Shown here: positions 8,105 to 63,616 of the stretch, in pieces
Layout of the letters: each line of letters starts with the position of its first letter
Position numbering within the stretch: the first letter of the stretch is position 1
Assembly (NCBI GenBank): GCA_029953675.1
Contig: JAMWBK010000001.1
Coordinates: 992,001 to 1,056,000, forward strand
Origin: Rhodosorus marinus CCMP1338
Lineage: Eukaryota > Plantae > Rhodophyta
Direction: 5' to 3'
Length of the DNA stretch: 64,000 bases
Made by a program: the position numbers and the translations under genes
Notes under the pieces: model-generated
The model's input: only the letters and a program-made list of their open reading frames with translations
Told to the model about the DNA's origin: nothing
Database searches by the model: none

Positions 8105-9145
8105 CTAACAGACAACAGCTGGAACAAGCGCTTGCTCGCTATAACTTGCGAGTATGTCCGACCAGCTAGGAGCGGACATTCTACGAATGTCAACTCGGAA
8201 GGTGTACGTCTCCCCAGGGACGATTTCTCCAGTCTTCAACCTCATTCCCACGCTAGCTTCCCCAAAACCTGCGACGAGGTTTTTCGTTGATCGGCTCTTG
8301 ACCAGACTTCCACTTGAGTCGTAGACCTTCAGCTTGACCAGCACTGGACCGTCCGGAGCTTCATAGGAAACCTGGCGAGATACTCTCTCACACGTGTCAA
8401 TGCTCTCGGGGCTCGCGTCACTGAATTGCACCGAAAACTGATCTGGAGTTTCCACATCAGCAACACCGACGACGTTCATTTGCGCTCTATCGAACCGGGT
8501 CCTCGCGTTACCTCCCCTCGGCCTGATATCTACACGCGCGATTGCCTTCTTTCCGGCGGGTAAATTTAAGCCCTGGTTAGTGATCTTCGCCTGGATGACT
8601 GTCTCCACGTTCACTCCCTCAGGTATATTGACTCTTGCACTACCCAAATACACAGAGTCGGTCTCATCCTTTATGGCCACTACTATGTAGGAACTGACGG
8701 TGGTCGTGTAGACAATCTTCAGATCAACAAACTGCTGCTCTGCAGGAAGAGTGTTAAAGGGATCCTGATAGCGGATGCTTTCCACGACCGCAGTGTGTTC
8801 TCCTGACCTCGAAGCTGTAATGTTACCATCCTCATCCTCCAGCGTGTTGACCACATCGTAGACATCGTCCACCACTAGCTCCGGAAAATTGATGAAGACG
8901 GACTTGTCACCGGTGAAGGGGCCAGTAATTTCAATTTCTCCAATTCCGAGCACATCCCCATTCTCGTTCAGCAGCGTTGATTTCAGAGTTCTAGGACCAT
9001 CAGCGGTAACCTGTACATGCGAGATATAAGGGGCCCTCCAGCTGATCATGGTAGGTCTACCCGACACCCACTTCAAAAAATCTTCAGCCGAGACCGTGAC
9101 CGAGGCAACAGCCCAGAAGGTCAAAAGGGCCAACCCAATCCGCAT
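8105..9145 (-). CDS. Secreted protein, 346 aa, three tandem ~110-aa Ig/CBM-like beta-sandwich modules
   Basis: Signal peptide MRIGLALLTFWAVASVTVSA; intronless; internal repeats (..VDIRPRGG.., ..VDIRRMS..W); clear paralog at 13181-14212. Confidence 0.88.
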   Translation of the reverse strand: MRIGLALLTFWAVASVTVSAEDFLKWVSGRPTMISWRAPYISHVQVTADGPRTLKSTLLNENGDVLGIGEIEITGPFTGDKSVFINFPELVVDDVYDVVNTLEDEDGNITASRSGEHTAVVESIRYQDPFNTLPAEQQFVDLKIVYTTTVSSYIVVAIKDETDSVYLGSARVNIPEGVNVETVIQAKITNQGLNLPAGKKAIARVDIRPRGGNARTRFDRAQMNVVGVADVETPDQFSVQFSDASPESIDTCERVSRQVSYEAPDGPVLVKLKVYDSSGSLVKSRSTKNLVAGFGEASVGMRLKTGEIVPGETYTFRVDIRRMSAPSWSDILASYSEQALVPAVVC

Positions 9146-10138
9146 GATGCTTACTCACAGAGTATGAAAGACGTCGTCTTTCACTTCCTACTCAGCTTAA
9201 CCCTTGTTGCCCCGACACCCCCCCCGACAGCTGATCTTAAGACACTCTCTACAAGAGTAATCCTTTTGCCTCCTATGCACCTCCCGCAACGGTCTCACCT
9301 TCTCCAGTATATCATCATCCGTTCATTCACAGCGTAGCTAGCACGAATCGTAAGGTGGTAGAACAGGTGAAGAGATAGTCTATGCCCACTTGTGTTATAC
9401 GTGAGATCCCTTTCAACCCCTGATCGTCACTCTAACCAACCATGGTTGTTGGGACAGCTTAGTACATTAACCGAGTAAGTTGAATTTGATGCAGTTTTTG
9501 ATTTACTAGCTTCAACTCCTTGCAAAAGCTTCGGATAAATTGGAGCTCAGGTACTTCTTAACATTACACCTTATCAGGAACTTACATCGCCCTCTTTTCC
9601 CCGTCCAAAAACTCCATCAGAAGAACGAATGAGCGCGGGAGGGGATGGGATTCCATGATATTTTCAGTTTTTGGAGGCACTTTGTTTCCAACAAAAAAAT
9701 ACAAAGAGAAAATTTTCAGGCATTTTCTGTGTTGTGTGTGTAGATGCGTTGAGCCCCCCCCTTTTTTTCACGTTTTGTCAACACTTTTCTCCCCCGCCCG
9801 CGCGCCTCCTCGACTTTCTCTAGCAACTCCCGATTTCTTCGGTTAGAAATTAAGGTTTTCATATATCAGACGTTTGCGGGATCCGATAACACACCCAACT
9901 TGCTTCGTTTCTCAGCAAAAACAGATCATTCCATAAAAGCTTGTCCAGTACGGCCGACAATTTTCACATGTAAATCGACGATTTACTTGTTCAGTGATTG
10001 TTCATTTGCTGTGGCTCCGTCAGCTGTACGTATTCGGCTCTCGCGGTTCTTGGTAGGTTTGTCATGACGTTAACGTTTATCGGACGGTTCGGATAAACTT
10101 CGACGTGGATAGACTATTAAAAACCAGTATAAAAAGGG

Positions 10139-11239
10139 AGGGATGTCCAATAAACTTATTCGAAAAAACAGGTCCGATTGCCCGTCCGATAAACAGGTCC
10201 AATAAATCGTATAATATTCAATCAACGTTAGTCAATAATCAATCATCTCATCATCATCAGTTTACGAGAGCCCAACTACGCTGAGAAGCGAGAAACAAGA
10301 CGCTGATGACGCGCGTCGAACAATAAAGCCGCGTTGGAACGCCATAAGGTCAAGGACAGCTCCGTGAGGAGGCTATCAAGACGACTTGGGCTGTGACGAA
10401 AGAGCCCACGAAACCAGCGAGAGCCGACACAATCAACTAAACCAAGGCACTCGATGATGAGTGGAACAAACCGATAGGACAAGGCCGAATCGCGGAGCGT
10501 AGAGTCCAACATAGCTGCAGCGTACTGGGACTCCTTCAGTTGCCGCATTGACCGAGCCGCAGCGCCACGGCAGCGTGCAGATGCGGGTAGGTATCTGGTC
10601 GCCTGAGGGCAAGGAATAGAAAGGTCAACGTACTCACTCCGACGGGCGCTGAGATCAGTCACCACTAGATCCTCCACCCGCTGCACCCCTGGTGCGTCAG
10701 CCGTATCAGTAATTGCCGTGACCACGGGCAGAGGGACTTCATACTCCACCTCCCGGTCCGGGCCCAGCATCTGGGATCTCCTGTCCAGGTATTGAATCAT
10801 GATTACTTCTTGGTAGGACAAACTCTCAGTCGACAGGCTGTCATGCCTTTGTGATTTGTTGAGCATGCAAAAACCGCCTTTGGGATCCCCCGACGGAAAA
10901 GGTAGTCACAACCAGGCGCGGGTCGATGAACAAAAAATAAATTTAAAAAATAAAATAAAATAAAAAAAATCAAACCTTAGTCTGGTCGGCAAGCGACCAT
11001 GCACCGAAAAAGATGAAAAAATCATTGAAAAAATATCGGACGCAATCGGTCGTTATCGGACCATTTAACGAAAAATATTTTTTGTTTTATATTCAGGTCT
11101 GATAAACTCATATCGGACGGGGTCCACAGAAAATACCTTCCATTATTACTATATAGAGCTCCGAAAACAGTTTATCGGACAGTCCGATATTTATTGCTCG
11201 CGATCGGACGGTTTTTTATCGGACAGAGATGACAACCCT
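10139..11239. mobile_element. Non-autonomous DNA element (MITE/hAT-like), copy 1, interrupted by a retroelement
   Basis: Terminal AGGGATGTC (10139-10147) and GACAACCCT (11231-11239) are inverted at 8/9. Clustered GTCCGAT / ATCGGAC motifs point inward from each end. Homologous to 25150-25638. No TSD was found. Confidence 0.6.
10250..10775 (-). mobile_element. 5'-truncated RLE-type non-LTR retrotransposon fragment (family A-related) with a (TGA)n tail
   Basis: Encodes EDLVVTD..YVDLSIPCP..KESQY..FVPLIIECLG..LWRSNA. ATCTC is duplicated at 10245-10249 and 10776-10780, and the equivalent site is empty in the 25.2-kb MITE copy. Confidence 0.85.
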
Positions 11240-11269
11240 TTGCTTGGGTATGCGCCAATTTCTGACTTA

Positions 11270-11578
11270 GTTGAAGAAAATATGCTAGGGGTTTGTCTTC
11301 CACAGGCATTCGTGCTTCGGCTCTAGAGCATCGCCCGGTGCCCGGTACCTCTGGTCATTCAAGTGCTGTGGGTTCATGGATTCCGTTCGTTGGTTTCGGG
11401 AATATAGTTCCGCGAACGTCCTGACCGTTTGTCCTCGTTGTTGACCCATTTTAAGCTTCTTGCTGTGGCGGATGCACGCAGCTTTGATGTTGGAGGCGCA
11501 CGATCTTCGCCGCGCCTAGTCTTTTTATTCCTTTCGGGTTTTTTTGGTTCAGTCTCCGATTAAAGAAATTCATTCAAT
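11270..11578 (+). mobile_element. Family A retroelement 3' end (degenerate)
   Basis: RLE C-terminal remnant (GIRASALEHR, FRERPDRLSS) plus the family A 3' UTR ending CAGTCTCCGATTAAA..ATTCATTCAAT, as at 60410-60480. Confidence 0.85.
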
Positions 11579-11705
11579 TGAAGAATGCATAGATTTCAAT
11601 GTTTTGGATGCCCTATTGGCCTCATCTGCTAAGCCATAGCCCCTGCCGTTCCAACCGGCGCATCCAGATTCTGATGCCCCAAGTGGTTGCCCCAATGCTT
11701 GATGT

Positions 11706-12490
11706 TGTTGGAACTGGTAGTTCTGACAGAGCTATACCCGTGGATGCGCATACACCGTTTATCGTAGCTAGGTACCCCGGGATGAGGGGGTTACACCGAT
11801 CTTTTCATCTAAATAGTGTTCGAAGTAGTGTTGCGCTGCAGTAGGCACCTGCTCAATAAAGGATACAGTTACCTCTTGCTCGAGCAACCCCTCTGGTCGC
11901 AGAGTGGCTAGCATATTATGTACCATACGTTGGTGCTAGATATAGGAGCAGCTGATTCTAATCTAAGTCAATAGCCCTAGACTAGTATGAGGTGCCTAGA
12001 TCACATATGGAGTTCCAACACTCCCCCTCGCCGAATACTTGTCTCGGCTTACCGGCATATCTGCAACTCCCAATCCTCACTTCCTATGCGTAACCTTGTT
12101 TGTCGAGTAATACGGTTGCTCCTCCTTCAGTCGATTGAGGAAAACGTTCCCATCTAGGATGTGCGTACAAAAACCCCATGTTTTTCATATTATGATCTGG
12201 TGATCTCGTCTTCGTGCCACTCATCATCCCGTCGGCTGTGTTGCGATTTCCTCCATGGTTCCGTCTCCTTTCGCGGCTCTCAGCCAGCTTCGAAACTCCC
12301 CTTGCAACTGTCCTTGGATATGATCCAGAATAGAATTCGCAGTGAAGCGGTTGCTACCGTGAGCAAGCCCTCTTGTTTCTCGCTTCTCAGGGTAGTTCGG
12401 CTCTGAATAAACGGATGATGATGTGAGGGGTTTGGTTGGTCGCAGAAGGAGGTGAGAAGCTCGTCTGTACTCAAGAAGCTGGTCCAATTG
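11706..12490 (-). mobile_element. LTR-retrotransposon 3' remnant: 315-bp LTR (11706-12020) preceded by a polypurine tract
   Basis: Perfect 10-bp terminal inverted repeat TGTTGGAACT...AGTTCCAACA. AGGGGGAG lies immediately 5' of the TG on the minus strand (12021-12028). The internal sequence is too decayed to classify and the partner LTR is not in the window. Confidence 0.62.
11755..11874 (+). mobile_element. Family C 3' tip inside the LTR
   Basis: CGCTGCAGTAGGCACCTGCTCAATAAAG matches the family C end (reverse complement near 6117-6144) at 25/28, with weaker similarity extending about 80 bp upstream. Confidence 0.55.
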
Positions 12491-12499
12491 TCATAGAAT

Positions 12500-12726
12500 C
12501 TCAGTTCAATAATGCATTTTAAATGGGGCATTTAATTTATTTTCATCATACGAATGAGCTTCGCTATATTGTATTCTAGTTGTATCCAATCATAAAGCAA
12601 TGGGGCAATTTTTCATGAATATGTGAAATAAATTTATGTAGGGGCATGCTTTTGCGCTAATGGCCACAATAAATTCATTCAATGCCACAGAATGTACTCA
12701 AATCTAGCTATTATTATTGAACTGAG
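12500..12726. mobile_element. Candidate 227-bp MITE
   Basis: Perfect 14-bp TIR CTCAGTTCAATAAT / ATTATTGAACTGAG around an AT-rich interior; no TSD recognised. Confidence 0.45.
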
Positions 12727-13180
12727 GCATGCCTCATCGCCTCATTGCCTCATTCCCCAGTGGTCCACTATAGTACCATTATTATTAGTACAAGTTCATT
12801 CCTCGATTTATTTTTGTTAGTTCATGCAAAAAGTGGGGTTGCCTAACCAAGCTGCTAGGGGTGGTTTGTAAGGCAGGATTGGTGCCCTGCGGGTCGTCGG
12901 TTGCAGACTACTCGCTTCGAGCGTTGGGGTGAGGGGGAGGGAGAGGTCTAAACTTCTAAAAGTGCGAATGCAGAGTGGGACTATGCTAAATGAGAGGCAA
13001 TTTAGAGAAGACTGTTAGAGTAAGTCTCGATATCGTTTACACGTCCTCGATGCTGCGGCTGAGGTGGTGGATATGGGTTGTGAAGAAAGATGGAAGGATG
13101 TGCTTCCAATTCATAACCTTGATGTGGAATCATTCTTTTATTTGTTTTGTGGATGAAGCGGGAAGTTTGCTGAGAGTCTC

Positions 13181-14212
13181 TTAGCATGCCACTCCAGGTA
13201 TCAATGCTGGCTCATTGCTTTCTGCAAGTATGTCCCTCCAGTCCGTTGCAGACATTCTTCTAATGTCAGTACGGAATTCGTATCTTTCACCTGGTACAAT
13301 ATCGGACGGGATGAGCCTTAGCCGGATCCTTACGTTTCTAGCACCTGCTGCTAGATTCCTGGCTCTTTGGCCCTTAACCCATCTTCCGTCAGAGTCAAAA
13401 AGCTTGAGGGTGATCATCACGGGGCCGTCCGGGGCTTCGTAGGATATTTCTCTCGCGATCGTCGTACACGGATTCAGCCTACCCGGGCTCCGGTCACTGA
13501 ACCGCACTGAAAAGCCCCTCGGGTTATTGCTGGATGCTGTAACAACCTTCTCTATTCTGTCGAAGCGTTCCCTTGCGGGAGTATTGGGTGCCCTGATATC
13601 AATTCTTATTATCATCTTTGTACCTTCGACTATGCGTCTGCCCTGCTCAGTGAATCTAGCCCGGATTGTCGTGCTCACATCCCTTCCAGCCGGCACGTAG
13701 TGTCTGGAGCTTCCCAAATAAACTAGATCAAGCTCATCCTTTATAGCTACGACAAGATAAGCATCCCTCGCAGCTGTATACGTAATCTCGAGGTCTGTAA
13801 ACGGTTGCTGCGGCGGTACTGTGTCAAAATCATCCTGAAAGTCGATCCGGTCGTATACCGCAACATGCACTTGAGAGTCCGATGCCGTAATACTTCCTCC
13901 GCCGTCCGTCAACTGATTTACAACCCGATAACTGTTCCCAACAGGTAGTGCAGTGGGGAAATCAATGAAAACGGATTTCGCGCCATGGAAAGCCCCGGAG
14001 ATCTCGAGTACCCCAAAAGCGAGTTGTTGGCCCCTTGAGTCCAGTAGCCTTGAGTAGAGCGTTCTCCTCCCATCCGTCTCAACTTCCAAATGTGACACGT
14101 ACGGGGCGGACGTGCTTATCCACCTAGGGGTTCCTTTCATCCACTTTAGCGAATCTGCAGCAATCCCTAGCACCAGCACTGCGGCGACTAAGGTCTTGTA
14201 CGCCAGCCTCAT
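13181..14212 (-). CDS. Secreted protein, 343 aa, paralog of 8105-9145 (three Ig/CBM-like modules)
   Basis: Signal peptide MRLAYKTLVAAVLVLGIAA; colinear with the paralog (APYVSHLEV, VVAIKDE...YLGS, ISYEAPDGPV, EFRTDIRRMSA..W). Confidence 0.88.
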   Translation of the reverse strand: MRLAYKTLVAAVLVLGIAADSLKWMKGTPRWISTSAPYVSHLEVETDGRRTLYSRLLDSRGQQLAFGVLEISGAFHGAKSVFIDFPTALPVGNSYRVVNQLTDGGGSITASDSQVHVAVYDRIDFQDDFDTVPPQQPFTDLEITYTAARDAYLVVAIKDELDLVYLGSSRHYVPAGRDVSTTIRARFTEQGRRIVEGTKMIIRIDIRAPNTPARERFDRIEKVVTASSNNPRGFSVRFSDRSPGRLNPCTTIAREISYEAPDGPVMITLKLFDSDGRWVKGQRARNLAAGARNVRIRLRLIPSDIVPGERYEFRTDIRRMSATDWRDILAESNEPALIPGVAC

Positions 14213-15732
14213 GGTTGATTAACGGCATGTGCTCCTTCGACAATAGACATCGCTCAGCTGCTGAGCAATGGCTCCGAGAGAAATGACTCCGAGAGTAGAC
14301 CGGTAGATATATAAAGCTTGCAGGGTTCGTCTCAACTGTGACAACGGGAGACATGTCTTTCTAGCCATTATGAGCTGTACAGTTCATTTCCTGATAAGTC
14401 GCTTTCTGGTTTAACCGTGGCGGCGGTTGGACCTAGCACAATCGGGAACTGAAAAATATGACTTCGCATGTCCGCCTCCCTACTTACTTTCTCAGATTGC
14501 ATCGATTTGACGCGTAAGCGCAATGCGAATTCCCACCGATAGCCTCAGACGCAAAAGGCCGTCGAACGACTTGCAGCTCAGAATGGTCAAATCGAAACAA
14601 TTCACATTCGCAACTTTTCGGAGAGGACGTCACACCACCTAAACGGAACGTGACCTGTGCATAGGTTCTGCCAATTCCGTTGAATCCCCACAGCGGTCTT
14701 TCGGCTGCCCTCCATGCTGTGGGAGGCTAAATCGAAACAATCCTTACTTGCTATTTTCCACGGAGAAGCCGTCAGACAACCTAAAAAGCGAAGCGGGGGG
14801 AACCGCGAATAGAACCCCTTGTATTAGCGCTGTCCATGTGACAATTCAAAGCAGCAGCTGTTTATACGAAGAACTTGGTCAAACGGGGCTTCAACCCACA
14901 TTTTATCATGACCAATTGAAACCTCCTTCCCGTGCGACACCCTCACTTTGTCGGGCCACCTCATGTGGCCACCTCTTGTGTTCCGATTGCGCAATGGCGA
15001 ACGCGCTAAAGTGTCATAAAAGATCTATTTCCTGTTTTCTTCTTATTATTTTTTGTTTTAGTTTATTTTCAATTCTAATCTGCCATAAATTGCTGGCAAA
15101 ATTTTTGGTTTGCCACCAAACGCCCTTTATTTAAGTCACTCATTGAATGACTCATCTGATGATTGGACTTTGTAGTCGAATCATTAAAGACGGCTTGATC
15201 CGCGAAAGCAGGCACAGTGGTTTTAACCTAATTGCAGGTTCCAGCAGGTATCCAACAGAAAGCTGCCCACTACGCTTAGTTGAAAAGGGCGGTACGTTGC
15301 CGTTTCATGAATCGTTCAGTCAATCATGCCTGCGTCTTTTTAGTGAAACACCGGGAATATGCCATACTGAGGAAAAGAACCCCCGCAAGGAAAGTTCAAT
15401 GCCTTTGTTTTGGATCTTTGTGAGCGCTGTTACGTTTCTGACTCAGCTAATGCTATTCTCAATGGCACTAAGATCCTGTTGACGAAGCCCTTGCTCTATG
15501 ATGAAGCAGCCGTATGTTGAGCTGAATTTCCTGTGTAGACATTGGATTCTCGCAGCTTTCCGTTCATGCCTGATCTGGCTGGTTTGTGTTCTAGCAATCC
15601 TTCCAATGGATTTGTGATATCATTATACGAAGGTGTACGTTTGGAGGAAAATTTTCAATGATGCCCCTTCGCTCAGCTTCACTAGAAAGTCAGATTTTTG
15701 TTTATACTACAAAAGTAAGATAACAGCGGACA

Positions 15733-17364
15733 CTAGGAAGCGACTAGTTTCGGGAATGCGAAAAGCCCCGGAATCACTCTCTCGGACCACCCAGAGCCCT
15801 CGGGAAACATTGCAATTCGCAGTTGGAGCTCCTCACCGCTTTCGAAGACACCTTCAGGAACCTGCACAGGAACTACCAAACCTGTTCTTCCCTGCTCAAC
15901 AGAGTAGGTCTTTGTGCTAAGAATCTTCTTGGATTCCAGGACCTGAAGTCTCGCCTGTACTACGCGGCCAGACTCCACGGATATAACATTCACCCCGATC
16001 TCGTTGAGTCCATCTTTCACGTCCAGCACTTCATCCACAAAACCCAAGAAGTCTTCAAACATAGGCGTGGGTGTGGGCACATACGTAGTTTCGCACCCGT
16101 CTGCTTCTTCGATCGAATAGACGTGCACTACCCCACTGTCGACCGCAGATACTTGATTCTCCTTCGGCGCTCCAATGACAAGGTAGTCCTCCGTGACGTC
16201 GAGCATTTTCCCAAAGTTGTCGTTTTCCTGTCCCATCGGGTTCACTACAGTGTTGGAGAGTTTGAATATACCGTCCACGTCCTTAGCATAGATGTAAACT
16301 GCGCCTGCGCCGGATGCAGTCTCTGGAGACGTCCAGGCACCAATGAAAATGAAGTTGCCCTTCGCCACCAGTCGTTGCCCAAAACGGAGATTTCCTCTCC
16401 GAGGAGGGTCCAAATGTTGCTTAAACTCCCATTGGTTTCCACTTCTCTGATACAATTGAGCTCCTCCAGTGTTTTCACCTGCCTCAGAGTCCCTGCGCTC
16501 TCCAGCGACAACGATATAGGATCCATCCGAGGATATCGCGAGACCTTCTCCAAAGTGAGCATTCACATCCGCAGGAACTCCATTGCTAGCATCGACACGG
16601 AATTCCTGTACTTCTACCCATTCTCCCTCGATCCTGTGGAAAACGTACGCTGCTCCCTCTCCGTCGTAAGCCCGCGGAGCCCCAGCGAGCAGCACATCGC
16701 CATTCAGTCGAAGTTCATCGGCCCAATGGATTCTCGGTACTACCCCGCGCAGCTGTTGGACGAGCTCAAATGGAGAGCTCTGATCAGCCCTCTCGTACAC
16801 GTATATTTTCCCGGCCCGAGCGATGTTGTCGACCTCGTTCTTCGTGAACCTGGCACCCACAACTAGCCGATTCCCCTCGATGGCGACAGAATATCCGTAG
16901 AAGCCGGACCTTTGTGAATCCCATGGAACAAGCCTCTGCGTTAGTTGAAACAATCCGTTCAGCCCTTTCTGCCACACGTACACAGCTCCGGACCTATATT
17001 CTCCTAGCGGCTCCTCGTATGGGGCTCCACCCACAATCGTGTCGTCCCATATATCAATGTTCAGTCCCAAGTACGCGAGGGACATTGGGTGGCTTGCCAC
17101 AAGTTCCTGTAGGGGTTCGAAGAGTCCACTCTGTGAGCTCTTCTCGAAGACGTAGATTTTGCCCCTCCAATTGTTGTTCCCATAGGCTCCCGCGATGATG
17201 ACATCACCATAGATCCGCGTGTAGTGACCCATGTTGTCATGCGCAGGGTCTTCCGAGAACGGAAGCAGTTCCTGGAGCTTTGAGACATTCAGGGTCTGTA
17301 GAAACTCTCCATGCACCGAGTAGAGTGATACCACTAAAAGCGCAACGCAGACTGTTTTGTACAT
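15733..17364 (-). CDS. Secreted FG-GAP 7-bladed beta-propeller protein with a PT linker and C-terminal Ig/CBM-like module (543 aa)
   Basis: Signal peptide; seven repeats of the type FG.xvai.gd.lvvGAp....G.vYv[FY]; linker TYVPTPTP; C-terminal ..LRIAMFPEGSGWSER resembles the modules of 8105-9145. Confidence 0.92.
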   Translation of the reverse strand: MYKTVCVALLVVSLYSVHGEFLQTLNVSKLQELLPFSEDPAHDNMGHYTRIYGDVIIAGAYGNNNWRGKIYVFEKSSQSGLFEPLQELVASHPMSLAYLGLNIDIWDDTIVGGAPYEEPLGEYRSGAVYVWQKGLNGLFQLTQRLVPWDSQRSGFYGYSVAIEGNRLVVGARFTKNEVDNIARAGKIYVYERADQSSPFELVQQLRGVVPRIHWADELRLNGDVLLAGAPRAYDGEGAAYVFHRIEGEWVEVQEFRVDASNGVPADVNAHFGEGLAISSDGSYIVVAGERRDSEAGENTGGAQLYQRSGNQWEFKQHLDPPRRGNLRFGQRLVAKGNFIFIGAWTSPETASGAGAVYIYAKDVDGIFKLSNTVVNPMGQENDNFGKMLDVTEDYLVIGAPKENQVSAVDSGVVHVYSIEEADGCETTYVPTPTPMFEDFLGFVDEVLDVKDGLNEIGVNVISVESGRVVQARLQVLESKKILSTKTYSVEQGRTGLVVPVQVPEGVFESGEELQLRIAMFPEGSGWSERVIPGLFAFPKLVAS

Positions 17365-18562
17365 GTTGGTAGCACCTAACGTGTTATACCAGTCTCCGCT
17401 TCTTTCGAGTCGCGAACTGTCCTTCTCTTTACCTCTCTCTTTCCAAGAGGAGCTTCAGATCTCTGGATCCAGAATTTATGGTCTGCGAAAATCCAAAGCT
17501 GGCGTTGATCCCATGGTTCTCCCGATATTAGGCCGAGGTGTCTTCATGCATTCTTGTGGATTGGGGCGATGCCAATCGCTAATGCATTGGCCTATCCTGC
17601 TGACAGGTTTGGCACGGCGGCAAAGCTAACGCGTACAATTCTGATAACCCGGTTGAGGCTACTAGGAATTTTCGAATTGAAGCGCGCTTAAGCCAGCGGA
17701 TATACTAGGTTGGTAAGAAACGTCATAAAATCCCGTTCTGTTCTGATAAAAGAACGGGGCGGGGCTGAGCACCGATGGGTGGTTGTTGCACATTGGCACT
17801 GAATGCGGGAATTGAATTCTAACTATAGCGCATAAAACAAAACAAAAGCAAGAAGAAGGTCCAACGGAAACGAGTGAAACGATGCTTAGCATCGTTTAGA
17901 GGACTGTTTTATACCACGGAGGCGAAGACGCCACAATCGTCAGCGGTGCTTAGAATCCTTGATTTCAGCACGTTCCAAAAATAGTTGTAAATTAATCCCT
18001 GCGCACGGAAGAGCTGACACTTACCATTTGTTTTCAGCAACGGAATAGTTATCAGCAAAAAAAAATAAAAAAATTCGAGTGAATTAGACTAGCACGGGAC
18101 TTCCATCGTTTATACACAGAGAAAAAAAGAATAGATTAATGTATTGATCGAAAAAACGGTCGTTGGATCGACTCTATGTGTTTGCTTGGCCGCCCTGATC
18201 GACCGAAAAATGATTGGGTACAAGGAAGATGGATTGGGGCGGATGCGAAGACGTGGTCTTCCTATCACCAGACTATACACACTCAACATGCGAAGAGAGA
18301 GCTCGTTCTGCTCAAGCGCTTGGCCTTGCACTTGCTGCTCCTCTTTTCTCCCTATGTGTGTGGGGCTGCCGTGGGGTCTGATACACAAGAAAGGCTCTTT
18401 TTTCAGCTTCTATTTCCAGCAGCAGTGGTAAAACGACATAGCCGGAATTTCTCCACCTTCGCTCCTCGCTGGGAACTTCTTGGCAAGTTTTTGAAATTGA
18501 AATGGTTCAAAAATAATTTGTAATAAGCATAATTAGGCTGATCTTTTTCCTGTGTAAACTGG

Positions 18563-19867
18563 TTAGCTCTGTCTAAGGTATTCTCGTAACCCATAACTCG
18601 CGCGTTCCGCTATCGCATAGACGTGCACCGCACCACTTTCCGCTGCTTGTACTTGATTTTCCTTCGGAGCTCCAATCACCAAATATTCCGCGTTGACGTC
18701 CACCATTTTCCCGAAGTTATCGTTTTCTTGTCCCGTCGGATTCAATATGGTATCATAGAGTTGGAAGATACCGTCCGTATCCTTGATGTACGCGTAAACC
18801 GCGCCTGCTCCTGGAGCAATCTCCGGAGAAGTCCAAGCGCTAATGAAAATAAAGTTGCCCATCGCAACGAGGCGTTGTCCAAACCGAAGATCTCCTCCTC
18901 GCGGAGGACTTAAATGCTGCTTGAACTCCCAACTACTTCCGTTCCTTTCATACAACTGGGCTGCCCCGGTGTTTTCACCCATCTCAGAGCTCCTGCGCTC
19001 CCCCCCAACCACCATGTACGATCCGTCCGACGATATTGCGTTGCCTTCCCCGAGGTGAGCATCCCCATTAACAGGAATCCCATTGCTCGTGTCGACACGT
19101 AGCTCCTGTACCTCGACCCATTCTCCGTCGATTCTGTGGAAAATATAACCTGCACCTTCTCCGCCATACGCCCGAGGAGCACCGCAAAGCAGCACATCAC
19201 CATGTAGGCGGAGTTCATCTGCCCAATGAGCTCGACTCATTGTTCCACGAAGCTGCTGCACTAGCAAAAAAGGAGAGTTTCGATCCATCCGCTCGTAAAC
19301 GTATATTTTCCCGGCCTCGCCAATTCTGTCCACCTCATTTCTCGTGAACCGCGCTCCGATTACAAGCCGGTCGCCTTCGATGGCTACTGAATATCCGTAA
19401 TAGCCTCTCCTCTGTGAATCCCATGGGATTAGCCTCTGTGTTTGATGAAAACGTCCGTCCAGCCCCTTTTGCCAAACGTAAACCACGCCAGACCTGTACT
19501 CTCCCTGTGGCTCCTCGTATGGAGCTCCGCCAACTATTGTGTCCTCCCATATGTCAATGTTTAGACCCAGATATGCGAGAGTCATTGGGTGGCTCGCCAC
19601 CAGTTCCTGCAGGGGTTCAAAGAGCCCAGTTCCTGAGTTCTTTTCGAAGACGTAAATTTTTCCTCTCCAATTCCTGTTTCCGTAGGCGCCTGCGATTATG
19701 ACATCTCCAAAAACCTTGGTATAGTGACCCATGTTGTCACGCGCCGAATCTTGAGAGAATGGAAGCAGGGTCTGCAGTTTTACAAATTCTGGATTCTCCA
19801 GGAATCCACCGAATACTGGGCGAAGTTGTACCAGCAGTATCGCGAGGCAAATCGTAGCCGTATGCAT
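18563..19867 (-). CDS. Secreted FG-GAP beta-propeller, close paralog of 15733-17364 lacking the C-terminal module (434 aa)
   Basis: Signal peptide MHTATICLAILLVQL; long identical stretches with the paralog (PLQELVASHPM, YLGLNIDIW, HWADELRL); ends shortly after blade 7. Confidence 0.92.
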   Translation of the reverse strand: MHTATICLAILLVQLRPVFGGFLENPEFVKLQTLLPFSQDSARDNMGHYTKVFGDVIIAGAYGNRNWRGKIYVFEKNSGTGLFEPLQELVASHPMTLAYLGLNIDIWEDTIVGGAPYEEPQGEYRSGVVYVWQKGLDGRFHQTQRLIPWDSQRRGYYGYSVAIEGDRLVIGARFTRNEVDRIGEAGKIYVYERMDRNSPFLLVQQLRGTMSRAHWADELRLHGDVLLCGAPRAYGGEGAGYIFHRIDGEWVEVQELRVDTSNGIPVNGDAHLGEGNAISSDGSYMVVGGERRSSEMGENTGAAQLYERNGSSWEFKQHLSPPRGGDLRFGQRLVAMGNFIFISAWTSPEIAPGAGAVYAYIKDTDGIFQLYDTILNPTGQENDNFGKMVDVNAEYLVIGAPKENQVQAAESGAVHVYAIAERASYGLREYLRQS

Positions 19868-20361
19868 CTTCCTGGTTGCTTAGTTTAGATCTATTCACGC
19901 TCCGTAAAAATCGTTAAGACCTTCCTTCCAGTAGTTGCATAGAGTTTGTGCGCCCCTTCTTGCCCCTCCACAAGCAGTAGCTCTCGCATGAGGTTTGAAG
20001 AGCAAGATTTCGTCTTCCTCACCTGGCTTACGTTCTTATGTTGCATCAGATTATTCAAACAGGGAAGCTCCTGAAGTCGCAATGCTTTCTTCGAAACTGT
20101 TTTGAACGTGTACAGACATCTTTCCCGAACATGAAACCACAAGCAGCAGAGATTAGAGTAGCAAGCGAGAAATTGAGCCAACGCAACGTGTTAGAGGAAG
20201 TATCTCGTCCTGATACGAAAAGCTATTAGGAAATTTCTGAGTGACAGTATTCAAGAATTGCGTCTGATCGTAAGGCATCAGAATCCATTCCAGCCCGGCA
20301 GCCGATCAGATTGCCATTCGACGCGCAAAGTCCGAACACACTCCTAAACTGAGAATCAAAA

Positions 20362-20453
20362 CAACCGATAATGACTGACCCGTTTCCAGCGGCGCAGCTG
20401 AGAACCAGACCCAACCGATAATGACTGACCCGTTCCCAGCGGTGTTGCTGAGA
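20362..20453. repeat. Two-copy tandem repeat, 50-bp period
   Basis: CAACCGATAATGACTGACCCGTT(T/C)CCAGCGG at 20362 and 20412. Confidence 0.9.
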
Positions 20454-21085
20454 GGCATTCGAAGGATTTTCATGATGGTAGAACGCCTGAAACTTCTAGT
20501 TGAAACAGGATGCGGATTTGTCGAGACACGGTCATTTAACCAAACGTTGCGGTAGTACGCTGGTCAATCGAGGCAGCCAGGATTGCCGTTTGTTTGAGGG
20601 AGGCTTGTGTGTTCATTTCGCATCAGCAGGCAGGGAATAATACCGCTCTCAGAGACAAGAGGTGTTCACTTGAGAACGGCGTTGAAAATGGCCAGTAGGC
20701 TTGGACTGCGTGATGCTGAGGTGGTGGTTCGCGGGGCTTGCTGAGGCCACGAATTTGAGGGTAAAAGTCAAACGATTATGATAGTCAATTCGCTCGACTT
20801 TCTTTCGGATGAAAAGAAGATGGTTGTGAGAGCGTACGCAGACGCCTCTTGTTTTTCTGGCGGGCTGCCTAAAAGCAAGAAGAGGCCCACGCTAGTTCTG
20901 ACGTAGGTGGGGGTCGTCGTGTGCTCGAGCACGTTCTACTGCACTCTAGCCGATCGGACAAAGGCTGAAAATCTTTCCAATACCCAGGTTGCACGAAGAT
21001 AAGATCAAGAACAATGTTGCCCGAGGCGTTTTCTACCTTAAGTGGTATTTGAAATTTTATCAAAGCCGGCTACACTGCGCTACAG

Positions 21086-22417
21086 CTATCTCAAGTTTGG
21101 GCATCCATTGGGACCGGGGCAAACTATCTCATAGTCGTAGGAAATCAACATTCCTTGGTTACCTTCAGGGTCTGAATCAGGGTTTGCGTCACAGTGTGGG
21201 CATCCAACGTTGATATGCGTGCTGGTCAGGTCCACCATCTTTCCGTACTGGTCATCAAAGTGGGGCCTCCCAAGACCCTGAGCCCTTCGCTGCTTGAACC
21301 TGCCATCGGGGCATTTGTGGAAGAAGTAGTACCTTCCGGCTTCCTTCACTTTACCATTGGTATCTTTCCACGCACCCGTAACGATAGCATTATCAATCAT
21401 CTTAATTCTCTGGCCGAATTTAGCATTGAAAGCACCTGTCGCGGGGTAAAGTGGCTGGTAGAACTTGTAAGTGCCGCCTGGTTGTCTCTTCCACATATAT
21501 GCGGCGCCAGTCCTTCCGTTTCGGGACCATGCAGTTTCACCACCCATGACGATCCAAAGCAGATCTTCACGAATGGCAAGACCCTCTCCAAGATGTGCTT
21601 GAACCTTGTTCTCAACACCAGGAGGGATCTGTGGGAAAAGCACCTGGATCTCCCTGTACTTCCCATCCCTGCCCTTCCTGAAGACAAACGCTTTGCCACG
21701 TCCTTCATAGCGCGGAGCTCCGACAAGTAAAATACCTGACTGCTCCCTTATTTCATCAGAGAATTGACCCCCGTCACCGTAGTAAATATCAGTTACTCTG
21801 AACTTGCCGTTGAGCTTATTCCAAAAGTACAAAGCTCCCGCAAGCTGTTTGTTCGTCATAGGATTGGTCATACGCCTGGATCCAATAATCAGCTCATTCG
21901 GGCTAACAACAGCCATAGAGTAGCCGAAGTATGCACTTCTCACGAGAAAGTCCGGAACCAGCTTGCCCCTCTGCTCGTACATGCGGGTCTCGGGGTTCCT
22001 TCGGAATAGATATGCCGCACCTGATCGAGGCCCAAATGTAGGCCAGAACGGACACCCGACAAGAAGAAACTGGCCACGAGAGTCGAAGCTGAGCCCGAAG
22101 TAGGACAGAGTTCTGGGATCTTTCGGAAGCAAGGTTTGTCTGTGTGCGACTGCGCCGCTCTGGAACCTCTGGTAGACTTCCACAGCTCCTGTCCAGTTTC
22201 TTCGTCCAAATTCGCCACCAAAAAGAAAGTTTCCATCTTCGAGGACTCTTTGGCCGAGAAATGATCTCCTCAGCCTCGGACTCGGAGCGATAATGTTCCT
22301 CTGCTTCGATATTACGGGATACGGGCAGTTCTTGAACTTGTCGCCTGGCGGAGGCTGTGCAGAGACGACGATCGCCAGGAACAGAAGCACGACCACAGAC
22401 AAAGTCTTTCCTTCCAT
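21086..22417 (-). CDS. Secreted FG-GAP beta-propeller, divergent basic paralog (start MEGKTLSVVVLL at 22417)
   Basis: Signal peptide; repeats YFGLSFD..LLVGCP..SGAAYLF, YFGYSMA, LGEGLAI, FGQRIKM, YGKMVDL; intronless. Confidence 0.9.
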   Translation of the reverse strand: MEGKTLSVVVLLFLAIVVSAQPPPGDKFKNCPYPVISKQRNIIAPSPRLRRSFLGQRVLEDGNFLFGGEFGRRNWTGAVEVYQRFQSGAVAHRQTLLPKDPRTLSYFGLSFDSRGQFLLVGCPFWPTFGPRSGAAYLFRRNPETRMYEQRGKLVPDFLVRSAYFGYSMAVVSPNELIIGSRRMTNPMTNKQLAGALYFWNKLNGKFRVTDIYYGDGGQFSDEIREQSGILLVGAPRYEGRGKAFVFRKGRDGKYREIQVLFPQIPPGVENKVQAHLGEGLAIREDLLWIVMGGETAWSRNGRTGAAYMWKRQPGGTYKFYQPLYPATGAFNAKFGQRIKMIDNAIVTGAWKDTNGKVKEAGRYYFFHKCPDGRFKQRRAQGLGRPHFDDQYGKMVDLTSTHINVGCPHCDANPDSDPEGNQGMLISYDYEIVCPGPNGCPNLR

Positions 22418-23779
22418 TATTACAATAATACTCTTCACACCCCTCCGACCTTCCCAAGCCTGTAACCCCAGCAAAAGAAACTGCTAGGACCTTCTCGCAA
22501 ATCCGACATGCAGATGCCCTCGTCGCCTACCACACGCCTGCTAGCTGCTGATCCCCATTAAGAAGGATTCTTCTCAAACACGAAAGATGGCAAAAAAAGA
22601 ATCTTACCGCGATCGACACGACAGATCGTAAGCTCCCCCCTACCCCACAGGTGGAGACGAAAGAAAAAGTATTGGAAACAGAACTAACGAAATTACTTAC
22701 AAGTTTCTGAGGCGGGAGGAGTACGTTGGAAACGTATGTAGAATACGGACAATATGCACAACTACTGCCATAGCCCCCTGCGGAAATTCGCCTTCAGATG
22801 GAACCGAAACGTCTATATTTTCTCGTGAGGGTGCGGTGACCTTAGACCCGCCCTGAGCTTAGTAACGTCTATTCAACTACCTGCTTAAAAAACATGGATT
22901 ATTATTATTTTCGTACACGTCACATCGCAATTCTGTAGCCATAGGGGGTCAACCGGAGGCGCTCACCCTCGAGTTTTTCAAAATACATACTTTTTATTCT
23001 TGTCGGAGGGGGGGTAGGAGAGTGCGTTGTTACGCAATCATGTGTTCCTATTGGCTACTGAGGCACCAGCCAAAATTTTTGTAAGGACGACCCCAGCGCT
23101 CCAGCAACGCACAATTTCACAGGTTTTTTTTTTTTTCCATTCTACCTCTTCGTGATTGAGGTCAGTCACAATGGATGAAAAAGATATTGCTTCACGCGCC
23201 GCCCCTAAGCAAACAGAAATCCTAAAAATATTATGGCTTTCGTGGGTTTGCGAGTACTACATGTGACTTTTTACCACAGATTTCCAGTCGGTTAAAGGTT
23301 CCATGGAAAAAGATCCACGCCCAAATCCTGTGTGCCAGTGGGTACCTTTGTCCTTTCAAACCTGCGTAAGGGCTTTCCTTCTTGCGACTCGATCACCGCC
23401 ACCCAGATAAACACAACGTTTTCAGGGGCCAGATTGGAACCGAAGCTATTCTGAAGATCGTAAATGATGATTGATTGAGTTCGGTTATCTAATGACGCGT
23501 GCTATCCATTGCACCTGAAACGGAAATACTAAAGAGGGTCAGAATGTTCCGGGAATATATGCATGGAAGCAAGGGAACAATATATCCGTTGTTGTTTGTG
23601 GACAGTGCTCGAGTCCTCTGGTTGCGTGAGTGCATTGGGGGTTCAACATGATTGTTGTTCGCGCTTCCAATAGCTTCTTTGTTTAGACCCCTTGGCGGAG
23701 TTCAGCCGTCCTTGTTTTGAAGGCTCTCTTTCCTTGCGTTGTGTGTACTTCTTCCGTCTAGGGTTTGTTAGCCCCCGAT

Positions 23780-23895
23780 TGAAAGTCTTGAACATCCGGT
23801 TCTCCGCAATGAAAGTCTTGAACATCCGGTTCTCCGCAATGAAAGTCTTGAACATCCGGTTCTCCGCAATGAAGGTCTTGAACATCCGGTTCTCC
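23780..23895. repeat. 30-bp tandem repeat, about 3.9 copies
   Basis: TGAAAGTCTTGAACATCCGGTTCTCCGCAA repeated directly with no spacers. Confidence 0.95.
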
Positions 23896-24189
23896 TCCTT
23901 GCACCTCTTTGCGCCAGTAGAATTGACTGCTCAAGATATTCAGCCGATCAGAACTAGCTCTGAAGGATGCGTATAAACGGAGGAGGGCAAAAGCCAAGTG
24001 CGTTGTCAAGACCAACTGGTTTACACTTGTACTCCCATGCGAGCAGAACCAGCGGGACACTCGCTTCTGTCAAAGGTTGTACTGTGTACTGCCAGCGTGA
24101 AATTATCCGCGGCAAGGAAGATCATCACATAATTTTCGATTCCAAACCGGGGCGCTTTTGCGTTGTCGACTACTCTGTGCCCTAGCATA

Positions 24190-24900
24190 CTCGCCTTGTT
24201 ACGAGTACTCCACCAAGCTGCAGTCCTCAAGAGCTTGTTCCAACAGTGTTCCACTTGAAAAGCCAGCTTTCCCAGTCTTGGAACACGCCATATAGTTGTT
24301 TTCTTGTCTTCCACTTTTTTAGGATTTTCTTCTCCACCAAATCCGGCCACCAAAATCAAATGGTTGATCCTCCATACTCCTGTAAGGAAGCAGTTGTTTA
24401 ATCGGCAAGGGCATGTGAACTGCGAAACTGAACGCGCCACAATCAAGCAACGAATAAGCTAACAAACAAACACATTCATTCGGTAAGCATTTAGAGCTTC
24501 GTATTCGATCCACTTGGAGGAATACGACTAGCAGAGGGCGCATTAGCACACTCGATTTGTTACGACTACTCCACCAAGCTTCAGTCCTCAAGAGCTTGTT
24601 CCAGCAGTGCTCCACTTCAAAAGTCAGCTTTCCCAGTCTTGGAACACGCCAGATAGTTGCCTTTCTTGTCTTTCGTTTTTTTAGGGACTTTCTTCTTCCT
24701 CAAAATCGGGCCATCAAAATCAAATGGTTGACCCTCCATATTTCTATAAAGCGGGGCATGTGAACTGCAAAACTGGATGAGCCACAGTCCCGCAATGAAG
24801 AAGCTAACAAACCTTCATTCGGGCAGCATGTAATAGAGCTCCCGTATTCGATCCACCGGACAATATCAGGTCTGTAGCTCTCCCTATTAGTGAGAAACGA
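24190..24900 (-). repeat. ~360-bp diverged tandem duplication, possibly a PIF/Harbinger ORF1 (Myb/NAM-associated) remnant
   Basis: 24208-24520 is homologous to 24568-24860. Both encode L(A/T)F(Q/E)VEHCWNKLLRT(A/E)AWW, resembling the F..EHCW..L....W motif. The duplication is certain; the identity is weak. Confidence 0.5.
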
Positions 24901-25149
24901 GTAAACCGTCCTCGCTTCAAAAAGGGTCCTGCTTACTAAAAGTTTCCGCCCCTTTGCGTTTTTGGCGGCCAGCAGCAAATGCGTCTCAGGAACCATATGA
25001 AATTTGTCAAAAAGGGAAAACTGTAACACTTTTTCCGGAAAAAGCTCGATGCCCGTTCTACCTGCTTTTCATCAACCGTCGAACAATTTTTTGTGCGGAT
25101 AGAATATCGAAAACAATTATAAAATTCAGATATATTTGACTAAAATTCA

Positions 25150-25638
25150 TAAAACAAACGAGTCCGATTCCTTGTCCGATAAACGATCCAATAAAACGTC
25201 CGATATTCAATCAACGTGAGTTTAATAGTCAATCATTTCCCGTCCAGATATTGAATCATGATTAATTCTCAGACTAACAAGCTGTCACTGTCATATATTG
25301 AATTGAGATTATTTATGAGTTCCACAGATTGTCATACTCGATCTAATTGGTTTTCCCGAGGAAGGGAAAATGATAATAGAGTGTAACTTGGGAACCACGC
25401 AGGCCTTTAACAATATGGAGAAAAAGTAAAAATGGTTCGATCTCTTTTTGAGATTCGTCTTTGATTGAAGAATATCGGACGCAAATCGGTCGTTGCTGAC
25501 CAAGGGGCTGTTTTTCTCCCTTATTCAGGTTTGATAGTTCTAGATATTCCGCGATTGCAGGTTCGAGAAACTCTAAAGGACGGTCTGAAATTTATCGGAC
25601 ATTATCGGACAGTGTTTTCGGACGTAAACGACAACCCC
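25150..25638. mobile_element. MITE/hAT-like element, copy 2 (empty retro insertion site)
   Basis: Colinear with 10160-10249 plus 10781-11239. Shares GTCCGAT/ATCGGAC motifs and the right end GACAACCCC; the left TIR was not recognised. Confidence 0.6.
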
Positions 25639-26463
25639 GTTTATTGTATTGCCAAAAACGTTTAAATCGAAACCCAAAAACAAAACAAAAACAGTATATG
25701 GGCAAGCTCAATTCTCGCATCCATAGCGTTAGCTCAGGGGATCCGGTTTTTGGACATCCCAGCCGGATGTACAGGCAATGTGGAAAACATGGCGGATTTT
25801 TGGGGGTTTAGTGGAAGTATTTTGATAAGTCCTATCGGTAGGAACTAGAACGTAAATACTACCTAGGTAGGTTCGTCCCGAGGACAAATTACCGTACAGG
25901 AAAATACCATTTACCAGGTAATAAACCAGAAAAATAAACGCTGAGCAACTAAACTCCGATTCGGAAAAAATGATTGAATTCTGCTCCAATTCCCAGAATC
26001 AGTCGAATTGGTATGGATTGCGAACAATAACAGTCAATATCGTATGATCATCCATAATCAATCAATATTCCGGGGTTCTTGTTAAGTGGTCAGTCTCTTT
26101 GTGTTTAAGGATTTCTGGTCTGCGTCAATTTCCCAGCTTTTGGTGTCGCGTTGTGTCGAAAGCCGTTAACACACTGAAAAGTCACGCTTGGAGTTGGCCT
26201 GCACATGTAAGGCGTTTAACGGTTAAAAAGGTGATTTTGAAACAATTTGAAAACGATTACCGCCAATTACCGATATTTTTACTCCTCGAAATTGGGGTCG
26301 TTTTCGCTTTGCCGGTAATAACGGTAACAAGTCCAATTACCTACAATGGGACAAAGACACAAGAACCCTCTAGATACCTGCCGAATTGGTATTAGAGGCT
26401 TTTCGCGATCAAGTTAACAGACATCAACCTTCCGTTATCTCTACGATTGAACCCCGACGTCAC

Positions 26464-26746
26464 AAAGAAGTGAAATACGCAAGGGCTTTGTCTTCCCCTG
26501 GAATTCGAGCTTTTGCTTTAGCTACCCTTGCTACTTGAGCGCGTTTTGGTTTTATGGATCCCGTGTTTCCTGTTGGCCCCAAAACTTGATCCGTGAGAGC
26601 CCCGACCGGCTCTCCTCGTTTACCGATTTGATTTTCCTGCTGTGGCGGTGCTTTGACGTTGGAGACGCGCGATCTTCGCCTCTAGTAGTCTTTGGCTCCT
26701 CTCGAGTTTGTTTTTCTCAGCCTCCGAATAAGCACATTCATTCAAT
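26464..26746 (+). mobile_element. Family A retroelement 3' end
   Basis: KEVKYARALSSPGIR... remnant and 3' UTR ending CAGCCTCCGAATAA..CATTCATTCAAT. Confidence 0.85.
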
Positions 26747-27479
26747 CTGGTCACATGGGTTTAAACACCGAATAGTGTCGCTCAAGGACGCTGTTGCGGA
26801 AGTGTGGTTGTAGCAGCTATCTACTCGCTTTATTCCGTTATACACTGTTATCCTTGAGGGGTAAATTCTAAGATTGACCAACTAGCCCCCGCCTTTTGTC
26901 TTTGTCCTCCACCCAGGCCCCTTTCTAATTCAGACCATTCTGCGTCATCCCTTCCCACGATCTGTAAGAAAGAATCCTCGAAAGCAAGGAAAGCATGTGG
27001 CATGTTCAGCGGTCCGAAACCAGATCCGTTAGTCTGGGGTTCCAGCAGGGAGCTCCCTAGTAAAACGTTCACGGGTACTGTTGGGAAACGGTGGGAGAGG
27101 AAAAACAAATACTCCTGCGCTGTACACGATGTGTGTTAAAAAAGTCGGACATATGACTTTGACTCTGTGTCCTCTACTTCTTGTTGTTTTTCAGCGAGGC
27201 GCTTGCTAGGCGCTTGACATATTCCTCAATGTTTGCTTTGATAAGAGTAGTTATGCAGCATCTTCGATGCAAGTATCCAATGAGGTATTGCCGTTCGACT
27301 ATCAAATCCTTCTTGATTCCCATCACGGTATTCTGATTTAGCACTGCATCACAGTCTTCCAATATGCACAACGCACGCACACATGGTCATGGGGTCATGC
27401 CTCCAAATATCTTCATGGTCGCATGATTGCCTTAGGTCTCCTGGAACACATTCAGTGCTTCGGAGTGTCGCTTCCCTTG

Positions 27480-41652: not shown

Positions 41653-42446
41653 ATAAATACCCGGGAGTTGAAAATACGCGTCTGTGTATATTTTTCCTAT
41701 GACACAATTAACAAATTCATACAAACCCCCAAAATTTGTAAACACTAGAAAATCAACGATTCTATTGCACACGGTTTCGGTTGGGCTGTGTTCCTGCTGA
41801 CAACAGCAAGCGTCTCACCAGGTCGGGCTCGGCACGTAAATGGTCTACATAACATTCTAAAACTTCATCCGGGATTTTGTAGGACGTCGTGGTTTTTGTC
41901 ATAAAATATCAACTAAAAACTTAACAAGAAATAGTACTGCATACAACTTGACTAGATGTAGGAGGTATAGTTCTCGTTCGGCTTATATATAAGAGCTTTC
42001 CCACCTTAAAATGAAACCCGCACATGTTGCTTCTATGATATGTAATTCAGGGACAAAGATCTGCGCTATTGCAACCAATTGCACGACAAAGCGCAAATTG
42101 TTTAAAAAAATCGTTTAATATACCTGTTACTACTAAATGTGTATGCAGCGACTTAATATTCGAATATTTAGCAGCCGGTTTGTCCCGTTTGCAGGGGAGG
42201 AAGGGGGGGGAGTGTGAGGAAAAGTGGTAGTGGGAAGTGTGGGGGGGAGGGTAGGGACGGGATTCTGGAGGAGGGTCTCCGAGCAGGAGAAAAAACAAGA
42301 AGCAAAACCAGTTACAGATATATGGTGTTTGACTCCATTGAAGCTGGTGAGGGAGCTGCCTCTCCGCAGGGTGGAGTGGGTGTACGTTCGTTGGAAACGA
42401 TGTGAGCGGAGAGTAGGTGTGCATCTGTTTCGAATTTGATCGGATC

Positions 42447-63400: not shown

Positions 63401-63616
63401 CTGCCAGAGAAAATCCAACACCAATCCTAGGGGCTTATGAAGTCGACGAGGGAGCCGTACGGCCGTGCTCTGACGACAAAGGGGAAGGGAACCGGCCGGG
63501 TAGGAGGCGATAAGGTGCGAAAACCACGAGAGAACACGCTCATGCCAGGCTGAGCGGTCACTGGTAAACAGGGGTAACCGGGACGACACGCACGCGGAGG
63601 AGGAAGACTCAGACAT
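60473..63616 (-). CDS. Family A ORF2: RT, CCHC knuckle and RLE (about 1047 aa after two G-run frameshifts)
   Basis: SPGPSGLR, IRPIGLVE, VDFTNAFN, GVQQGDPLSP, AYHDD, CPLC..AH..SC, IRRH, ADLVI..YVDLAVPNP..KEIKY..LIIECFG. The span of 3144 nt is a multiple of 3. Confidence 0.9.

Follow-up and report, generated by a model that had tools for sequence, protein, structure and literature searches.

Porph_assoc (PF27624) modules are ~100-residue β-sandwiches, represented structurally by 8WAE, which corresponds to residues 610–719 of the GH86 β-agarase of Flammeovirga sp. OC4. FG-GAP_2 propellers occur in secreted bacterial proteins, many of which are cargo of the type IX secretion system (T9SS). The integrin alpha headpiece combines a seven-bladed FG-GAP propeller with a following β-sandwich, and FlgD_ig (PF13860) domains are found in arrays. 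Here, we compare these systems with a cluster of five genes (A–E) at positions 8105–22417 of a 64,000-nt stretch of DNA (hereafter the window; forward-strand positions 992,001–1,056,000 of the chromosome-scale contig JAMWBK010000001.1, assembly GCA_029953675.1) from the unicellular red alga Rhodosorus marinus CCMP1338. To our knowledge, little has been established about red-algal extracellular-matrix proteins, and we know of no described endogenous red-algal protein that recognizes the sulfated galactans of the wall.

We propose that the five genes may constitute an array of secreted extracellular proteins that arose by local duplication, is particular to the Stylonematophyceae lineage, and is put together from two building blocks: a seven-bladed FG-GAP_2 propeller and a ~100-residue, Porph_assoc-like β-sandwich. 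Both blocks are of known kinds; what is new is the presence of Porph_assoc modules in a non-enzymatic, eukaryotic setting.

A co-oriented array of secretory-type proteins

The nuclear assembly of CCMP1338 is chromosome-level and comprises 31.2 Mb, 8392 genes, and 24,821 introns (PMC10250338). All five genes of the cluster lie on the minus strand. Gene A (8105–9145, 346 aa) encodes a predicted signal peptide and three Porph_assoc-like β-sandwich modules: M1 (aa 21–122, nt 8780–9085), M2 (aa 123–232, nt 8450–8779), and M3 (aa 233–346, nt 8108–8449). Gene B (13181–14212, 343 aa) is a paralog of A with the same three modules. Gene C (15733–17364, 543 aa) encodes a seven-bladed FG-GAP_2 propeller (aa 24–421, nt 16102–17295), a PT linker (aa 422–438, nt 16051–16101), and a tail module (aa 439–543, nt 15736–16050). 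Gene D (18563–19867, 434 aa) is a propeller-only paralog of C, and gene E (21086–22417, 443 aa from its ATG) encodes a divergent FG-GAP_2 propeller with a Cys-rich C-terminal tail. An initial annotation, made from the nucleotide sequence, had described the same anatomy; the PT linker that it placed in C is indeed present, but its PT stretch amounts to just ~8 residues (VPTPTP).

The NCBI gene calls on this assembly give the same five products as the open reading frames (ORFs) A–E, all of them single-exon, and between SPB1 (FtsJ, DUF3381, Spb1_C) and window position ~27.4 kb the annotation lists A–E alone. Each protein has a single hydrophobic segment, located at its N-terminus, with a cleavage-type site of small residues just after it (VSA↓E, IAA↓D, VHG↓E, VFG↓G, and VSA↓Q in the five proteins A–E). 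A second hydrophobic segment is absent from all five, and homologs from other strains likewise begin with a hydrophobic N-terminal stretch. ORFs, gene calls, and N-terminal segments thus agree with the initial description of five minus-strand, intronless genes of secretory type. By charge, the mature proteins form an acidic group of A, C, and D (pI 4.8–5.2, with A at 4.8) and a basic pair of B and E (pI 9.1 and 9.7, respectively). Their basic charge could allow B and E to bind anionic polysaccharide or to pair with their acidic paralogs.

Transcript-derived proteins from other R. marinus strains include P0002 (347 aa, 80% identical to A), P0004 (543 aa, 92% identical to C), and P0005 (434 aa, D-like). 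The orthologs of A, C, and D are therefore transcribed in related strains, and because these sequences are colinear with the genomic ORFs, A, C, and D have no coding intron. Metagenome scans for orthologs of E and the propellers returned nothing or only distant loci; as they also missed known MMETSP contigs, they are uninformative on expression. The absence of introns had been taken to set the cluster apart from its neighbors and to hint at foreign origin. SPB1 is indeed intron-bearing (split over several frames), unlike the adjoining cluster. Intron absence is nevertheless no mark of the cluster, since the three other called genes seen in full within the window, encoding a sulfatase, an amino-acid transporter, and a 449-aa product, are single-exon as well, and it gives no support to a foreign origin.

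The five genes belong to two paralogous families. By BLASTP, identity is 50% between A and B, 76% between C and D (aa 4–420), and ~31% between E and either of C and D; tblastn found no extra copies of A–E in the window. Growth of the array by local duplication, as the initial annotation had suggested, is supported.

A β-sandwich module shared by both families

No link between A/B and the tail of C is seen when the five proteins are compared by BLASTP, and profiles built from three sequences give a marginal link (P about 0.004–0.007). With deeper alignments the relationship becomes clear. Comparison by hhalign connects M1 with M3 (P 2e-10), M2 with M3 (3e-9), M1 with M2 (1e-6), and M3 with a tail group (3e-6) consisting of the C tail, the P0004 tail, the two modules of the homolog P0007, and a module of another homolog, P0127. 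These alignments are near full length and in register (75–86 columns), with scores of 38–60, whereas 60 column shuffles reached no more than 20 and reversed profiles 12–14. P0127 is itself a hybrid, in which A-type M1 and M2 are followed by a PT linker and then by a C-tail-type module, whose identity is 33% with the C tail (BLASTP E 4e-10) and 35% with the first module of P0007. In P0007, a propeller 50% identical to that of C leads through an S/T/P-rich linker of ~150 aa to a pair of tail-type modules. Judged by these profile comparisons and the hybrid, the module common to A/B and C is real, and the two families share it, as had been suggested.

An AlphaFold2 (AF2) model of A consists of three consecutive seven-strand sandwiches (predicted local distance difference test, pLDDT, 66). 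M3 carries a Cys pair, with one residue near the start of the module and the other at or near the C-terminus (Cys252 and Cys346 in A), which is kept in almost all complete members of the A family and fits an oxidizing extracellular location. A and B had no match in the Pfam and NCBIfam copies that were searched (the PF27624 model was not among them), and single-sequence searches of the PDB with the cluster proteins returned nothing useful.

The module and its bacterial relatives

The identity of the module emerged from profile searches. A HMMER search of 1.84 billion representative proteins with an A/B/P0002 profile matched an Aquimarina tandem-module protein (E 3.6e-5), in which M2–M3 of A align with a tandem at residues 651–849; with a 10-sequence profile the match reaches 67 bits and covers both modules. 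The Aquimarina protein consists of a DUF1565/β-helix region, the two modules (in an otherwise unannotated region), RicinB, and a T9SS tail. A word-indexed search with its modules gave one match, a His-tagged, 118-aa 'beta-agarase' fragment from Flammeovirga sp. OC4; it bears PF27624, and its sequence is that of PDB 8WAE. When the A-family profile was compared with the PDB, 8wae_A was the sole significant match (E 4e-4), with both M2 and M3 aligning. Precomputed PF27624 annotations, weak or faint, are also present for A, B, P0002, and P0007.

With the motif EFWSSTGW as the key, which recovers close relatives only, 185,579 prokaryotic genomes were scanned and yielded 23 loci, spread over Aquimarina, Flammeovirga, Reichenbachiella agariperforans, Marinoscillum, Agaribacillus, Neolewinella, and an uncultured flavobacterium. 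The hosts of the module in these marine, agarolytic Bacteroidota are secreted and of three types: GH86 enzymes, a GH16 enzyme (Neolewinella), and the β-helix/RicinB proteins of Aquimarina. In the Flammeovirga sp. OC4 enzyme, the GH86 domain, which matches the BpGH86A porphyranase 4AW7 (E 2e-174, aa 35–608), precedes the 8WAE module (610–719), a CBM6, and a T9SS tail. Several Aquimarina genomes carry pairs of module-bearing β-helix/RicinB genes ~7 kb apart (L005/L004, L006/L007, and L008/L009), so the module family has been tandemly duplicated in bacteria too.

Aligned by hhalign against 16 bacterial modules, M2 scores 97.5% (P 6e-12, 96 columns), M3 94%, the tail group 85%, and M1 58%. A hidden Markov model (HMM) built from the bacterial modules alone detects A with 31 bits, B with 25, other A-family members with 20–43, and P0132 from the alga Bangiopsis with 85. 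On this profile evidence, the A/B modules are distant members of Porph_assoc, an assignment that is new here. Algal and bacterial modules share the pattern (V/I)xYxA...R.I.V......(W/Y)LG....V.aG.....v.v.l......G..Y....IRP.....W/R...DR, and both occur in secreted proteins, in tandem copies, and next to flexible linkers. They differ in that identity between them is ~25%, the bacterial EFWSSTGW motif is not conserved in the alga, and algal M3 has its own conserved Cys pair. Furthermore, the algal proteins are without glycoside hydrolase, lyase, CBM6, or T9SS domains, and a Pfam search found no catalytic domain in the algal proteins.

The FG-GAP_2 propellers

C, D, and E match PF14312 (FG-GAP_2) with 124.9 bits (1.3e-36), 117.2 bits (3e-34), and 53.4 bits (3e-14), respectively, against a Pfam gathering cut-off of 23, which places them in the same repeat family as the secreted bacterial propellers. 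C contains seven Pfam FG-GAP_2 stretches, as expected of a seven-bladed β-propeller. Its AF2 model, built on an alignment of 32 sequences, has an overall pLDDT of 87: the propeller (aa 30–420) exceeds 90, the PT stretch (residues 424–438) is disordered, and the tail is modeled as a β-sandwich with a pLDDT of 62–83.

The best structural matches of the C model in a Foldseek search of the PDB are integrin alpha headpieces (propeller plus thigh; E 5e-21 to 1e-15, TM ~0.53), which share with C the order of a seven-bladed FG-GAP propeller and then a β-sandwich. In contrast to integrins, the sandwich of the algal protein is joined by a flexible linker, and similarity at the level of sequence is insignificant (E 0.75). 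We considered membership in the integrin alpha subunits and rejected it, as C, D, and E are without DxDxDG loops, leg (calf) domains, a transmembrane segment, and a cytoplasmic tail; the proteins terminate right after the propeller or after one module. C, D, and E are integrin-like in fold only. The DxDxDG-type Ca loop (searched as D.[DN].[DN]G) occurs zero times in their sequences, which speaks against the Ca binding that the initial annotation had associated with the propellers.

A word-indexed propeller search of 5.8 billion proteins, with 120 matches listed, placed two R. marinus orthologs, D itself, and P0007 at the top. The remaining listed matches are 23–36% identical, and all that have a source name are bacterial, the named sources being Ardenticatenaceae, Phycisphaerae, Poribacteria, and marine Bacteroidota with T9SS tails. 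The best non-algal matches among the 120 are bacterial (E 3e-56, 24–31% identity), and none of the 120 carries a eukaryotic source tag outside Rhodosorus. No listed bacterial match combines FG-GAP_2 with PF27624 in one protein. The algal proteins differ from the secreted bacterial propellers in consisting of a single propeller of ~400 aa.

Distribution, age, and origin

Among the 1.84 billion representatives, the A/B/P0002 profile retrieved seven full-length homologs (P0124–P0130). At least two A-family clusters come from Bangiopsis sp. CCMP1999 (Stylonematophyceae), and the family was found only in Rhodosorus, Bangiopsis, and MMETSP/Logan assemblies. M2 and M3 are separated by PT, PS, or PA linkers in P0125, P0126, P0127, and P0130. 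A further protein of Bangiopsis sp. CCMP1999, P0132 (1437 aa), has a GSDH-type propeller and Big_5 domains followed by three M2-type modules set apart by long PT linkers, providing a second 'head plus module' layout in the same algal class.

The GC content of A–E (0.51–0.53) and that at third codon positions (GC3, 0.51–0.57) are the same as in SPB1 and in an upstream ORF at 608–2704. Between C and D, synonymous divergence (dS) is ~1.7 and the ratio of nonsynonymous to synonymous divergence (dN/dS) is 0.10, and DNA similarity is confined to the coding sequence; between A and B, dS is saturated. The C/D pair is under purifying selection. Native composition, old dS values, and sharing with Bangiopsis together indicate that the array is old and has been kept by selection. 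A recent transfer is not supported, given the native GC3, the paralog dS of at least 1.7, and the occurrence of the family in both Rhodosorus and Bangiopsis.

The initial annotation had called the components bacterial-looking, and this stands, with the module falling in PF27624 and the nearest relatives of the propeller outside the red algae being bacterial FG-GAP_2 proteins. Likewise, the modules are homologous to one another, no homologs in other eukaryotes were seen in the searches above, and the A, C, and D orthologs are transcribed, all of which agrees with what that annotation had put forward. Bacterial-looking components in intronless genes might also suggest bacterial contamination or an assembly artifact. 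The genes lie, however, within a 3.8-Mb contig between the intron-bearing SPB1 and other eukaryotic genes, their GC3 is native, and orthologs are present in the transcriptome assemblies of other Rhodosorus strains and Bangiopsis, making such an artifact practically negligible as an explanation. Because the nearest outside relatives of both blocks are bacterial, an old inter-kingdom transfer of both, before the split of Rhodosorus and Bangiopsis and in either direction, appears likely on these sequence relationships.

A proposed role in the extracellular matrix

How might these proteins be used? We propose that the ligand of the modules is the anionic, galactose-rich polysaccharide that the alga itself keeps bound to its cells. 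With three modules each, A and B would cross-link the matrix multivalently or act as coat proteins, C would present a propeller 'head' tethered to the matrix via its linker and module, and D and E would act as untethered propellers. We put this reading as a whole, a secreted array whose modules anchor to or cross-link a galactose-rich matrix, at a little below an even chance; the role is drawn solely from architecture and context. The polysaccharides of Stylonematophyceae remain cell-bound, and galactose accounts for 58–87% in three of five strains (PMC9031348). The module follows flexible PT, PS, or PA linkers, is present in one to three copies, and is combined with two unrelated heads, namely FG-GAP_2 (C and P0007) and the GSDH-type propeller with Big_5 (P0132); these features suggest that it is used like a targeting module. 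That the bacterial module travels with enzymes acting on red-algal galactans and with carbohydrate-binding modules (CBMs) is counted toward binding of a galactan coat.

Several observations weigh against this proposal. The PF27624 annotations are graded only 'weak' (B) or 'faint' (A and P0007), and the bacterial-only HMM does not detect the C tail directly (0.5 bits); what ties this tail to the bacterial family is only transitivity and the profile–profile comparison (85%). In algal M2, another residue takes the place of the first Trp in EFWSSTGW, a motif invariant in the bacteria. A search of the accessible literature gave no description of a biochemical role for PF27624 or 8WAE, and the module may serve as a spacer instead of binding. 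No B ortholog turned up in the homolog search. Lastly, the upstream regions of A–E share no words (k = 7–10, a low-power search), and neither physical nor regulatory linkage was seen behind the complex that the initial annotation had envisaged. A scan for sigma-70 promoters and terminators was near shuffle expectation; these are bacterial signals, irrelevant to a eukaryote.

If the modules were spacers, they could be generic Ig-like domains or protein–protein interaction domains, and the array would contribute to protein adhesion or a proteinaceous coat with no glycan recognition. Foldseek of the A model points this way, as it yields only generic tandem MG/FN3/Ig sandwiches (CD109, TEP1, C5, RbmA, and GbpA), with 8WAE absent among the 50 matches listed, and the integrin headpiece that the C model resembles is a protein-binding device. 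M3 also aligns with FlgD_ig repeats by hhalign (92%, 64/79 columns), a likeness that explains the weak bacterial matches, most of which are S8 peptidases with 11–15 FlgD_ig domains. However, M2 scores 1.3% against FlgD_ig compared with 97.5% against the agarase/porphyranase-associated family, which is the best-supported one. The Pfam FlgD_ig model has no hmmscan match in the algal proteins at E ≤ 1, and the bacterial Porph_assoc alignment has no significant match to FlgD_ig repeats; the comparisons suggest a relation between M3 and FlgD_ig at the superfamily level at most. A head–linker–module layout with two unrelated heads is, moreover, typical of a substrate-targeting module. Overall, we regard generic Ig-like modules as unlikely, though a serious contender to matrix anchoring.

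As another possibility, the A/B and C/D/E arrays may be neighbors by chance or through local domain shuffling, with no joint function. The lack of a common upstream motif would fit this, as would the absence of the module from D and E and the 4-kb, repeat-bearing spacer that separates A from B (9146–13180), which contains no called gene; the shared orientation is an automatic outcome of tandem duplication. Against it, at least one movement of the module between the families has occurred in other species (P0127, P0007), which argues for the same purpose, and we consider a mere coincidence of position unlikely.

An extension of the matrix-anchoring proposal, which we put forward with considerable doubt, is that a single galactan-recognition module, exchanged between kingdoms in the distant past, serves both Stylonematophyceae and the bacteria able to digest the walls of red algae: the alga would employ it in tethering propellers and cross-linking its coat, and the bacteria within agarases and porphyranases. 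The same overlap could be read as defense. Secreted proteins made of modules only might act as decoys, occupying the wall-galactan sites targeted by module-bearing agarases and porphyranases, or might sense or aggregate the bacteria that produce them. The module is common to enzymes of agarolytic Bacteroidota that attack red-algal walls, and A and B consist of modules only; yet the idea is purely inferential, identity to the bacterial module is ~25%, and we consider a defensive role improbable.

On the extended reading, with one galactan-recognition module common to alga and bacteria, A, B, and C would form the first family of endogenous red-algal proteins that bind wall galactan, and the FG-GAP_2 propeller would be a matrix-anchored effector. 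Should the modules bind galactan, the cluster would offer a first handle on how a red microalga organizes its cell-bound polysaccharide coat, would provide new probes for red-algal glycans, and would link the wall-building proteins of the alga to the wall-degrading enzymes of its associated bacteria. If they do not, the array would be a lineage-specific but otherwise ordinary set of secreted proteins with Ig-like domains and propellers.

Other features of the window

A single-exon sulfatase gene (42417–44120, plus strand; PF00884 at 1e-53, SGSH_C, and a C-terminal PKD domain) lies ~20 kb from the cluster and encodes a possible modifier of sulfated polysaccharide. The single-exon genes for the amino-acid transporter and the 449-aa product occupy 52528–53919 and ~56146–57495, respectively. 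The plus-strand ORF at 608–2704, labeled 'SOS1' in the initial annotation, has no Pfam match at 1e-4, and this label was not confirmed.

The ~5 kb upstream of E (22418–27364) contain no called gene, and their GC content falls to 0.43 at 24–26 kb. A 30-bp tandem repeat (3.9 copies) is located at 23780–23895, and a 338-bp direct repeat at 24183–24513 and 24544–24856. By self-blastn, dispersed repeats are common to the A–B spacer (10.1–11.6 kb) and the region at 24–28 kb, upstream of E. Further along, long, GC-rich (0.58–0.59) minus-strand ORFs within 45752–50532 and 60473–63895, which are not among the called genes, include reverse-transcriptase domains (RVT_1, at 45752–48202 and 61651–62610) and are probably retrotransposon copies.

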